DNA from: Bugula neritina
Taxonomy: Eukaryota > Animalia > Bryozoa
Direction of reading: 5' to 3'
NCBI GenBank assembly: GCA_964035545.1
Contig: OZ037770.1
Coordinates: 2,046,001-2,110,000, forward strand
Length of the DNA stretch: 64,000 bases
This document shows positions 36,528 through 64,000 of the stretch, in pieces (positions within the stretch are counted from its first letter, which is position 1; each line of letters begins with the position of its first letter). The position numbers were made by a program, and so were the translations under genes. The notes under the pieces were generated by a model. That model was not told the DNA's origin and did no database searches. It saw nothing but the letters and a program-made list of their open reading frames with translations.

Positions 36528-36722
36528 TCAGTTTTCTTCTGTGTCCTTGGTATTTAAGGGTAGGAGTGCTTCGTCAAGTTTGTTGAGATACTTTGTTGCT
36601 ACGGGTGCATACCTGTCCCAAAAGCCTACTTTATCATAATCTCTTCTAAACTCTTGCTTTATCTCACCAACTTGATGAAGTATCCTCTGTTTTAATTTTA
36701 GCTGCTCATCTAGCTGCCTTCC
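36528..36722 (-). CDS. Terminal (or penultimate) exon of the coiled-coil gene: [64 protein letters not shown]
   Basis: gtattttag acceptor, phase 0, 64 open codons to TGA; internal CAG|gtatgc donor at 36613. Confidence 0.8.
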   Translation of the reverse strand, partial: GRQLDEQLKLKQRILHQVGEIKQEFRRDYDKVGFWDRYAPVATKYLNKLDEALLPLNTKDTEEN

Positions 36723-39700
36723 CTAAAATACAGCACAACAAAATATATTTAGTATAGTTGCCCAGTTAATATGCTTTGATATTTATTTTTGTAGCTAAAG
36801 CAACGGAGACGCTAGATAATAAATTTTACAAAACTAAAAATTTATCCCTTAAATACTTTAATATGTTGTTTTGCATACACGCGTGTCTTCATGGTTTATT
36901 TTGTTTTCTTTCTGCATCTGCTTTTTACAATAAACAACCAGGTAATCAGAAACAACATAAATTGTTAATTCTTTATTCAACTACTAAAAGTTATGGATCA
37001 ACAGCTTCAACAAATAATGAATGTTATTTTAAATCACACATCTTTATAATTTATAATCTATATTAATCTTAACAGACATGAGTGTACACGCTATGGATGC
37101 AAGTGCGGATAAATATGTATGATTGACTCCACGTGTGAATGTCTAGTATAGTTTAACCGACAGCATGGTATTACCACTACTTTTTAGGCATTTGAAAATA
37201 AGCTTTGAACATGGTAGATGGCGTTATTGATGCAAAAACCTAATTTAACATACTCCTGTAACACATTTTGAAGTACAAAAAATAATTTTTTAGCTTTGCA
37301 AAAGTCTTTATTTTTAGACGTCTTATTTATAAAAACTGTGAGACTTCAGCTCAGATGTCCTGCAAATGTGTAGAACTTTGAGAAACAAATGTTATCCTTT
37401 TTTTCATTTTCCTTACCTTTATGCTTGCAACTTCAAATTGCTTTTGATACTTGATACTCTGTAACAAATTAAACAAAAATAACTGCAGTTAATTGACTTG
37501 TGAAGTCAAACTAAAATGTATATATTACTAGTTGAAAATGAATAGAAAATAAGCTAAAACTACGCAAAATAGGAATCAGCATGTTTTTGTATTTCTAAGG
37601 AATGATCATAGTCTATAAGTCTGTATAACTTTCTTCAATGCTAACTTTTATAACTGGCTCAATTCTGACACATAATTGAGGCAAACACTGCTTATATCAT
37701 CAAGTTTTTATAAAACATTCGAGTTTTTTAATTATACTGGTATGTATTTACCTCTTGTCTGACTGTTTCTCTTTCATTCGTCATCGCGATTGTCTTCAAA
37801 TTTCAAAAAAAAAACTAAGCAACTTCAATCACCAGATATGAACACTTAAAGAAAAAAAGTCTTATAAAAAAAAAATGTATAAGCCCAAGTTGCAGCTCTT
37901 AGTGTAAACTCTAGATAAGCATAGTTTTATAAGTTCTTTATCTGCAACTTGGCTAAAGTTAAACTTTTAAAAAACAACAGTTGCCAATCTCTAGAAAGTG
38001 CAAAGTCTCAAAACAGTTTTGATTAAAAGTATGGCCTAGCATTGAAAATATTGTATGTCGCTGTGCTAGACATATAACTTACCAGCTGTTTATGGAAACT
38101 CATAAGTTTATACTAAAACTGTATCCTAATATGTATATGTGAATACACTTTTCTTGCAAATAAACTCTGGTGTTGATTAAACAAGTTACCACTGTGAGTA
38201 TGGAAAAGGTGAACCAAGAAAAGTATAATGATTGCTAAGGTTCAAAACTTTTTTGATAGCCAAAATTTGTGAACAAATGCTTAAGCACGATGTCAATTAA
38301 AAATTTCTAATTATACAGTATACATTATGAAGGACATTAGTAAAATGTACTAGTATAGTGTTGCTCAGATAAATAAAGCACCAAAACTCCACAACTAAAT
38401 ACTAAAAAATGCAAGCCTATATATAAATAACGCTCGCTCATGTTTATAGTATTTAAGCTTCTGATGGACAAAAACAAAAAAATACTACTGGGCTACTACT
38501 TACCTCCTCTTGTTTTTCTTTTAGCTGCTTTTCTAATCTATCGACCTGTAAAACCAAGATCATAAAAGTTAAAAATACCATCAGCCTTGAAATTGCTTAC
38601 GAAACTGGCACATTATACTCTGTATTTATTGGTTAGTTACCTTTCCTTGAGCCTGGCCCATGTTCTCTGACTGTGATAACATCTGAAAAATAAAAATAAT
38701 TTCACATGAGTGCTAAAATATGCATATGCTGTATATGTCATATAGACTTGTGTTTGTGCGTGTGTCTGGGGTTGTTATTTTCAACTTATGGCTTCTAATA
38801 GTAAACATTATAGAAAGAAAAAAAACTAACAACCTTAAGCTAAGAAAAGAAAGGGTACAAAACAAAGCAAAAGGGTACTGTTCAATAGTTTGACACTAGT
38901 AAGGAGACAGCCCAACTTTCGATAGGATGAAAACACCCGGCTTAATCAATGCAACGAGGAGGCCCCATCTGTGCCAGCAGCACCATAGACAGTCCACTAT
39001 CCTTGACTTCACCATTCCAGAAGTCGTGCTCTCAAAATCATATAAATATTTATTAAATAACTTTTCAGATTTTACTAACATAAACCTTTGCCCTTTGTTC
39101 GTTTTAAAAATATTAGTTTTAATTGCTTTGCTGACTTTTATTCTTACCTCATAATTATGATGGACTCACCAATGGCTTTACGGAGAATGAAACTGATGAC
39201 CTCGTGCTATTATATCAACCAACTTGTAGCCATTAGATTATTTAATCTGCTTTTATTTCAATAAATTATTCAGATAGTCAGCAAATATATATTTTATTTA
39301 ATATTGCTTCAAATTTTGATCTTAAAGAAAACAAAACTATATTCAAAAATGCTATCTTAATTTCCATCCTATAAGTTAAAACCTTTGCTGGTAAAAACAA
39401 ATTTGGTAATTTCAGCATTTTATGTGCGGCCTCTAATAATGGAATAAAAGTAGCTAGAATAAGGTTTACCTAAAACATTACTAGATATATTAAAGTAGGA
39501 AAAACTAGAAAATAGCTGGCAGAACTTTTAACTTTTTTGGATTTTGTTGATAAACTGAGACAATGCTTTAGTTAATTTCTTTGATGTTTTAATTATAATG
39601 AAAGTTAATGTGAAATTATTTTTATTAGCTTTGTGAGAGCAGAAAAAGCGGAACAAAAATTAAGCAATAATGAAAAAAAAACTCATTTGAAAATGTTGAA

Positions 39701-63700: not shown

Positions 63701-64000
63701 TGTGCATAGAATGTACACAATATTCAGATAAACTATACACCATTTTATATATATATATATATATATATATATATATATATATATATATATATATATATAT
63801 ATATATATATATATATATATATAATTAATACATATGTAATATAAGTAATCTGTTTTAGCTAAAACAGAAAACAAATAGTTTAATATGTGGATGATTCTAA
63901 CATTAAAACTATAAAAAATAGTGTCTATTTGAAAGAATACTCTCCAAATAGAATGGGCATCAAAACTTACATCGGACTGATATTCCAACTTTTCTTCTTT
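36528..64000 (-). CDS. 3' part of a long coiled-coil protein gene made of 42-nt phase-0 microexons (5' end outside the window)
   Basis: AG-[42 nt]-GT open exons start at lower coordinates 63971 (partial), 58647, 57652, 57515, 56762, 56119, 55981, 55255, 51151, 50497, 50343, 50135, 49049, 48031, 47602, 46790, 46428, 45546, 45395, 45257, 44535, 43488, 42460, 39773, 38641, 38504, 37752 and 37417. Example peptides: [43 protein letters not shown] 195-nt exon at 36528-36722 follows. Confidence 0.85.
38740..39155. repeat. Unclassified ~400-bp inserted sequence, duplicated at ~57755-58168
   Basis: Absent from the paralogous units at 45490 and 56215; near-identical second copy. Confidence 0.6.
40012..41440 (+). 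mobile_element. Penelope-like element family 2, 5'-truncated, between two (TA)n arrays
   Basis: RDDGFG RT remnant at the 5' end; ORF 40268-41104 with WNNPPYS and GIY-YIG ([38 protein letters not shown]). Confidence 0.93.
41354..41404 (+). ncRNA. Hammerhead ribozyme (PLE family 2)
   Basis: tattgtgc-CTGAGGA-gtgccgaagaggcat-GAAA-ctattag-TA-gtgcaata. Confidence 0.82.
41517..42274. mobile_element. MITE family A copy within (TA)n
   Basis: TIR cacaggatagttaaggg/cccttaactatcctgtg. Confidence 0.92.
43603..44040 (-). mobile_element. Solo LTR of a second, related Gypsy family (also at ~51265-51705)
   Basis: Similar to the PBS-adjacent LTR at 54321-54755; end motif gtgcacaaaacta shared with the 17899 element. 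Right boundary approximate. Confidence 0.7.
45685..46144. mobile_element. 460-bp MITE, PIF/Harbinger-like (TAA TSD)
   Basis: ~45-bp imperfect TIR gcgtagggccacacgacgc…/…gcgtcgtgaggtcctacgc, with TAA on both sides. Confidence 0.8.
48601..49025. mobile_element. MITE family B copy
   Basis: tagacccttttt…tttgaaaagggtct termini; similar to 16441-16852. Confidence 0.75.
49335..50014. repeat. Long (TA)n arrays with a tandem duplication of a 79-bp unique spacer
   Basis: gatatatagcccatgctaac…agtaagcat at ~49610-49688 and ~49936-50014. Confidence 0.9.
51995..54755 (-). mobile_element. Internally deleted and rearranged Gypsy (5' LTR 54321-~54755, PBS, gag, RT and RNase H remnants)
   Basis: PBS-like tgttagcagaggtggga at ~54302-54318; gag [15 protein letters not shown]; [10 protein letters not shown] (~52670); RNase [25 protein letters not shown] (ORF 51977-52291). 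Confidence 0.85.
59431..61612 (+). mobile_element. 3' remnant of a BEL/Pao LTR retrotransposon (integrase C-terminus, PPT, 3' LTR with internal fold-back)
   Basis: ORF 59440-60066: [64 protein letters not shown] ggtgggag; LTR starts TG at 60114 and ends CA at 61612. Confidence 0.92.
62502..62552 (+). ncRNA. Hammerhead ribozyme motif with core G5A change (probably inactive)
   Basis: CTAAGGA instead of the CTGAGGA of the paralog at 41354. Confidence 0.7.
62696..63451. mobile_element. MITE family A copy (duplicate of 41517-42274)
   Basis: Same TIRs and same flanks. Confidence 0.92.
63477..63744. repeat. ~98-bp inverted repeat around (TA)n; each arm carries a hammerhead motif (family 3)
   Basis: Plus arm 63489-63539: tttat-CTGAAGA-ttgtgtacattctatgcacat-GAAA-ctagtag-TA-ataaa. 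The minus arm 63682-63732 has CTGAATA. Confidence 0.85.

Follow-up and report, generated by a model that had tools for sequence, protein, structure and literature searches.

An atlastin-type GTPase head followed by an array of two-heptad micro-exons in the bryozoan Bugula neritina

The stretch analyzed here (the window) comprises 64,000 nucleotides (nt) of Bugula neritina chromosome 6 (C6:2046001-2110000), taken from an assembly of HiFi reads at 132x (PMC11480708); extended coordinates cover the window plus 200 kb to its right. The minus strand between C6 ~2.0825 and 2.1723 Mb carries a gene, termed gene 1 herein, that consists from 5' to 3' of nine ordinary head exons, 51 micro-exons of 42 nt, and one last exon. 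Joined computationally, these exons form a single open frame of 1,216 amino acids (aa) from the first Met, with no stops and with matching phases that also agree across the junction of head and rod. An earlier note, made from the letters of the window, had described positions 36528-64000 as an array of at least 28 such micro-exons and proposed a rightward extension in search of the N-terminal domain. The array is real, while position 36528 itself belongs to the stop codon with which an ordinary last exon of 186 nt ends; the extension, once run, revealed an atlastin-type large GTPase upstream of the array. The parts of gene 1 are as follows (window coordinates unless stated otherwise).

Extended 126346 down to 86652 (up to C6:2172346), minus strand, right of the window: head exons 1-9, encoding the GTPase, the middle domain, and the first rod helix
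Right of the window, the array reaching extended 85823, minus strand: array exons 1-23
63971-64000 (63971-64012 extended), minus strand: array exon 24 of 51, split by the window edge
57515-58688, minus strand: array exons 25-27, 42 nt each (low ends 58647, 57652, 57515)
55255-56803, minus strand: array exons 28-31 (low ends 56762, 56119, 55981, 55255), with a three-exon group repeated internally as 29-31
49049-51192, minus strand: array exons 32-36 (low ends 51151, 50497, 50343, 50135, 49049), the second copy of a large block beginning at exon 33
45257-48072, minus strand: array exons 37-43 (low ends 48031, 47602, 46790, 46428, 45546, 45395, 45257)
42460-44576, minus strand: array exons 44-46 (low ends 44535, 43488, 42460)
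37417-39814, minus strand: array exons 47-51 (low ends 39773, 38641, 38504, 37752, 37417)
36528-36713, minus strand: last coding exon, an ordinary exon of 186 nt (61 codons and the stop)

Within the window we counted 27 whole array exons (37417-58688) and the one cut by the edge, i.e., 28 exons of 13 types, where about a dozen types had been noticed. All six peptides quoted in the earlier note were located on the minus strand as stop-free, phase 0 exons of the form AG-42 nt-GT. Several splice sites of the array are weak, and one exon outside the window has a GC donor. A generic splice rule that had not been trained on the array recovered 20 stop-free exons of 42 nt on the minus strand between 36400 and 64000, compared with zero to four at each other length divisible by three between 30 and 120 nt; on the plus strand it recovered none. 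We rejected a chance origin of the 42-nt exons on this basis (20 versus at most 4 at any other length). A relaxed search found no broken or inverted exon copies in the introns. Protein searches conducted exon by exon returned only DNA-derived fragments running into introns, which is not evidence of silence, and a metagenome scan with the last exon yielded nothing that could be confirmed; the four sequencing runs compared are all DNA, with introns covered and splice joints absent. Standard annotation is likely to miss or split genes of this kind.

The exons have a pronounced heptad pattern. The fraction of hydrophobic residues (LIVMFY) across all 51 was 0.80 at exon positions 1 and 4, 0.59 at position 8, and 0.31 at position 11, where 15 of the 51 exons carry Ala in addition, and did not exceed 0.25 at any other position; the hydrophobic positions first noticed (1, 4, 8, and 11) thus hold for the complete array. 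Hydropathy along the array has periods of 3.50, 7.01, and 13.97 residues, and none of the 714 array residues is a proline. In the first heptad, Val or Ile occupies position a in 32 of the 51 exons, and Leu occupies position d in 26. By established coiled-coil rules, Val/Ile at a together with Leu at d is the pattern of a parallel dimer, from which we infer that the rod is a parallel two-stranded coiled coil. The 51 two-heptad exons and their flanks give ~790 residues of uninterrupted heptads, or a computed length of about 115 nm at 0.148 nm per residue.

The last exon carries the heptad register onward and then encodes a predicted helical hairpin (residues 2-28 and 32-54; predicted local distance difference test score [pLDDT], 86), the second helix of which is predicted to be amphipathic. 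This exon is open, with an identical stop, in other samples, and its nonsynonymous differences per site (pN) amount to 0.12 against 0.20-0.28 for synonymous ones (pS). We regard the hairpin as a candidate variable binding tip. Within 36528-36713 the amino-acid changes are concentrated in the hairpin's turn and its second helix, with both flanks nearly unchanged.

Selection on the micro-exons was examined in 31 paralogous exon pairs, which together differ by 144 substitutions. No stops were observed against an approximate expectation of 10.9, and no indels against about 20.2 expected from the intron flanks. By heptad position, pN was lowest at a/d (0.065), higher at e/g (0.097), and highest at b/c/f (0.134), with an overall pS of 0.138. 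Positive selection was therefore rejected, pN at the exposed b/c/f positions (0.134) lying below the corresponding pS (0.157); the proposal that surface variation serves as a diversification system finds no support in the same values. Between gene 1 and its neighboring paralog (gene 2, below), dN/dS was 0.25 for the head. Array dN/dS was high, at 0.64-0.75. These results indicate that the rod is coding and that its frame and register are maintained, while its surface drifts near neutrality. Because the core is conserved and the surface nearly neutral, the rod resembles a spacer rather than a receptor under diversifying selection.

The complete array comprises 23 exon types; the earlier note had taken those that it saw to be unrelated in sequence. 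Similarity among the first 23 exons is instead greatest between exons four apart (mean score, 16.8 versus 2-9 at other lags), so an unrelated origin of the types was rejected and an ancestral four-exon unit probably came first. A large block of ~18 exons was subsequently duplicated, exons 11-28 recurring as 33-50, and a three-exon group was repeated inside, a block-duplication pattern of growth like that of nebulin (PMC1553488). Paired segments of the duplicated blocks form a mosaic of 79-97% identity. An intronic composite of transposon remnants at 40464-42300, made up of a GIY-YIG (Penelope-like) open reading frame (40268-41104) and a ~760-bp element, was duplicated along with the exon block and recurs at 61612-63477 with 97% identity; it appears to date one duplication or conversion step as later than the insertion. 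The range of segment identities and the shared composite together point to several exchanges of different age. An assembly artefact was rejected, since the copies of the duplicated block are 3-21% divergent, their insertions are not the same, and the assembly has 132x HiFi coverage. Contig depth in run X1, which is only a rough guide, was ~48 where the sequence is single-copy and ~150-170 where it is present three times.

Gene 2, the tandem paralog next to gene 1, has eight head exons in the window, all on the minus strand and in an open frame, from 13409 to 17779.

17567-17779, minus strand: gene 2 head exon, P-loop
17120-17257, minus strand: gene 2 head exon, G2
16179-16337, minus strand: gene 2 head exon, G3
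15448-15579, minus strand: gene 2 head exon, G4
14708-14852, 14319-14431, about 13748-13876, and 13409-13545, minus strand: remaining gene 2 head exons
Extended 222646-257448, plus strand: third paralog (gene 3), with about ten 63-nt rod exons and one 42-nt exon

The ninth exon of gene 2 is at C6:2031621, and its own array of 42-nt exons is left of the window, at C6:2.002-2.032 Mb. Mapped from match coordinates alone, this array holds about 21-26 exons, with the large block in single copy, so that the two neighbors differ about two-fold in rod length. Exon order is kept between the paralogs. Gene 2 lacks a counterpart of 44998-45722 (exons 41-43) at that place, a loss in frame. In runs X5 and X6, whose DNA comes from a relative at about 7% divergence, contigs connect 43573 directly with 44999, so that exon 44 is absent in some copy. 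These copy-number differences, in gene 2 and in the DNA of relatives, bear out the suggestion that rod length changes with exon number; together with the exon anatomy they support the idea of a modular, in-register coiled-coil rod whose length moves by whole exons. The gap in gene 2 and the X5/X6 joint have a breakpoint in common at window ~44998. The 3' ends of genes 1 and 2 are 96% identical compared with about 88% for the head region, which suggests a recent exchange between the two.

The presence of both 42-nt and 63-nt rod exons in one family implies that the shared quantum is seven codons. Gene 3 also has a pair of large rod-start exons resembling each other (extended 245103 and 257009), which may reflect duplication within the gene or an alternative 3' end. 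A search of the genome with the G2 exon returned 18 open loci, about 17 of them in the family; the weakest G2 match, a C9 locus with the top PF02263 score among the chromosomal loci, is probably an ordinary atlastin. Another 14 or so atlastin-like loci whose G2 exons are open lie at C6:1814256 (plus strand) and on C5, C7, C8, and C9.

The heads of genes 1 and 2 carry the motifs GAMRSGKS (G1, a P-loop with arginine), VTQGIW (G2, with its Thr), DIQG (G3), and IRD (G4), and in gene 3 the G3 motif is DIQS, the Gly being lost. Single head exons matched PF02263 (GBP) with expectation values (E) of 0.0008-0.01, just under the whole-protein cut-off, and the joined head matched single-domain atlastins at E ~1e-25 to 1e-30 in a local comparison. 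The best PDB matches of the G2 exon were Xenopus RNF112 (9JJU, E 1e-6) and atlastin-1; a P-loop exon profile, built on an alignment with a natural homolog of 982 aa, matched generic atlastins only. In a quick tree, the three Bugula heads formed one branch on the atlastin/RNF112 side with a support of 97, apart from two GBPs, and the G domain is nearer atlastin than GBP by the PDB ranking and by this long-branched quick tree. With motifs for G1-G4 in place, the head is by sequence a GB1/RHD3-type large GTPase (PF02263), though not a canonical atlastin, GBP, or RNF112.

Several hallmarks of those three families were looked for in gene 1. No transmembrane segments follow the head of the gene 1 model, in which the highest 19-residue hydropathy after residue 300 is 0.2; neither atlastin's transmembrane pair after the three-helix bundle nor an RNF112-type transmembrane helix before the C-terminal amphipathic helix (the RNF112 layout; PMC12012479) was found in gene 1. 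The GBP-type context of G1 and G3 (Y-L-M-N after the P-loop, and DTEG) is absent, the motifs being atlastin-like. The gene 1 protein ends in TEEN and has no CaaX prenylation box. Its model begins with the P-loop GTPase and has no signal peptide or hydrophobic leader. In three paralogs the first Met falls within the P-loop exon. This exon is preceded by a splice acceptor, however, and coding sequence may continue in a further exon upstream, which bears on the presence of an RNF112-type RING.

Transposable elements and repeats also occur in the window.

1-2300, plus strand: degenerate non-LTR (long terminal repeat) retrotransposon, with reverse transcriptase and endonuclease remnants and many stops
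32049-33514, 40268-41104, and 61578-62252: remnants of GIY-YIG (Penelope-like) retroelements, the pair at 31789-33808 being a 785-bp inverted repeat of 95% identity
21573-22334, 26788-27548, 41509-42347, and 62688-63477: four copies of the ~760-bp repeated element, flanked by (TA)n, 87-93% identical, in both orientations
30356-30778: 86-bp tandem repeat, 4.9 copies
45680-46150: high-copy element resembling a miniature inverted-repeat transposable element (MITE), with inverted ends, inside the array

Broken LTR-retrotransposon remnants lie within introns at 18000-26000, 52000-55000, and 59440-60066, and include Ty3/gypsy-like reverse transcriptase and integrase pieces as well as a BEL/Pao-like integrase end.

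Building on the observed exon anatomy, the single open frame, the selection against stops, indels, and core changes, and the DNA copy-number differences, we consider it likely that gene 1 encodes an anchor-less atlastin-type GTPase with GTP-dimerized heads and a long two-stranded spacer bearing a binding tip, the length of which evolves by intronic recombination. GTP-driven dimerization of the heads, as in atlastin, RNF112, and GBP1, would hold the parallel two-stranded rod together, and the rod would space the head from, or tether it to, a C-terminal binding tip. Every rod exon has phase 0 and a multiple of seven codons, i.e., a whole number of heptads, so that unequal crossover, deletion, or conversion within introns would preserve both frame and heptad register; it is for this reason that we attribute the evolution of length to intronic recombination. 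The rod may have grown from one 14-codon exon to the four-exon unit and then by duplication of the ~18-exon block, with its length still changing. Under such a scheme the helix and the length quantum would be under selection, and the surface would not. The layout of head followed by array recurs in gene 2 and, with 63-nt exons, in gene 3, which favors this interpretation.

Several points weigh against it. Head-to-rod splicing across introns of 30 kb and 10 kb is a model; the G3 motif is DIQG rather than DTQG, which leaves GTPase activity in some doubt; the quick tree, in which GBPs supplied just two outgroups, gives Bugula a very long branch (3.3); as the exon pairs overlap and are not independent, the numbers of stops and indels expected from them are approximations; and both an immune role and a membrane-binding tip are putative.

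As for the job of such a protein, a GBP-like cell-autonomous defence role would be the likeliest, a preference we hold tentatively, because the family is expanded, fast-evolving, and anchor-less. An insect precedent is the antiviral BmAtlastin-n, which contains a coiled-coil region but lacks transmembrane segments (PMC4926086), and open GBP1 spans ~28 nm on bacteria (PMC12091997). The most serious competing explanation, which we nevertheless think unlikely, is a housekeeping or structural one, namely a GTPase-headed protein that works as a long-range, golgin/EEA1-like tether of membranes or as a cytoskeletal rod, with no defence role and a tolerated drift in length. A proline-free dimeric rod of ~115 nm with an amphipathic tip would fit this well, atlastins and RNF112 remodel membranes (PMC12012479), and a nearly neutral surface suits a passive spacer; yet the number and divergence of the loci (about 17), together with their very long branch, recall a defence family more than a housekeeping gene, and the transmembrane anchor is absent.

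Diversification at the level of splicing, with symmetric exons skipped differently per cell or stage to give a repertoire of rod lengths and surfaces, seems improbable to us. On its side, none of the 51 exons departs from symmetry or register, and a number of splice sites are weak; a GTPase family that has expanded is plausible as an immune candidate, and alternative splicing occurs in ROCO GTPases whose exons each carry one repeat (PMC11378527). However, the exposed positions are without the positive selection seen in ROCO exons (PMC3341825), no inverted or broken spare exons were found, exon order is kept between paralogs, and genomic duplication suffices to explain exon symmetry. We give equally little weight to a related defence variant in which rod length is itself the diversified trait, gain and loss of exons in the genome, together with regulated skipping of exons of two or three heptads, yielding rulers in ~2-nm steps to ~115 nm; if it were true, the rod would set the reach of the GTPase to a symbiont, pathogen, or membrane surface. 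B. neritina is the host of the bryostatin symbiont. To read the array as a duplication in decay, or as a gene of its own unconnected to the GTPase, is very improbable: the high array dN/dS and the transposon-filled introns speak for it, but no stops, indels, or lost splice sites occur in 51 exons, phases fit across the head-rod junction, three paralogs share the layout, and the last exon stays open to an identical stop in other samples.

The interpretation as an anchor-less GTPase with a recombining spacer would make gene 1 a case of gene structure matched to protein geometry, in which each exon is a whole number of heptads and intronic recombination alters coiled-coil length without breaking frame or register. 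One family would contain both 14- and 21-codon units, and its paralogs would offer a ready length series for rod-length effects in tethers and coats of the atlastin/GBP type. It also points to an unrecognized, expanded family of candidate immune GTPases in B. neritina.

In the literature, of which our coverage is incomplete, we found no described large GTPase with such a heptad-quantized micro-exon rod. Exons of phase 0 whose length is a multiple of the structural repeat are familiar from the 21-codon exons of the CD23 stalk and tropomyosin and from the 54-nt exons of collagen. CD23 and tropomyosin differ in having few such exons and collagen in being a triple helix, whereas Bugula has tens of coiled-coil micro-exons on an enzyme, and a single family uses versions of 42 nt and of 63 nt. 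The micro-exon genes of schistosomes code for small secreted proteins and show mixed exon lengths, heavy skipping, and fast surface evolution. The likeness to them that had been suggested for this locus extends to the runs of short symmetric exons and no further, gene 1 encoding a large, presumably cytosolic GTPase with one fixed exon length.

Among GTPases, gene 1 shares with atlastin, RNF112, and GBP, and especially with the anchor-less insect BmAtlastin-n (PMC4926086), the G1-G4 motifs with a P-loop arginine and a helical middle domain; with the anchor-less insect atlastins it further shares a coiled-coil extension, the lack of a transmembrane pair, and lineage-specific extra copies. Unlike in these families, the Bugula rod has ~790 residues, about four times the 28 nm of open GBP1, and is built from heptad-quantized micro-exons in variable number; gene 1 is also without a CaaX box and has DIQG at G3, and no RING was seen in its model as read from the P-loop exon. 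The LRR-ROCO and NB-ARC-TPR genes of brown algae (PMC3341825, PMC11378527) also combine an NTPase with an array of one repeat per fixed-length phase 0 exon, and occur as clustered paralogs differing in exon number. Their arrays, however, are ligand-binding LRR or TPR repeats under positive selection, with inverted spare exons and demonstrated alternative splicing, while that of Bugula is a coiled-coil spacer with conserved order, no positive selection, and no spare exons found. The super-repeats of nebulin (PMC1553488) are alike in that a rod was lengthened by repeated multi-exon block duplication, leaving a hierarchy of repeat periods; nebulin differs in having exon borders off its domain borders and no GTPase head, whereas each 42-nt exon of the Bugula gene is exactly two heptads.

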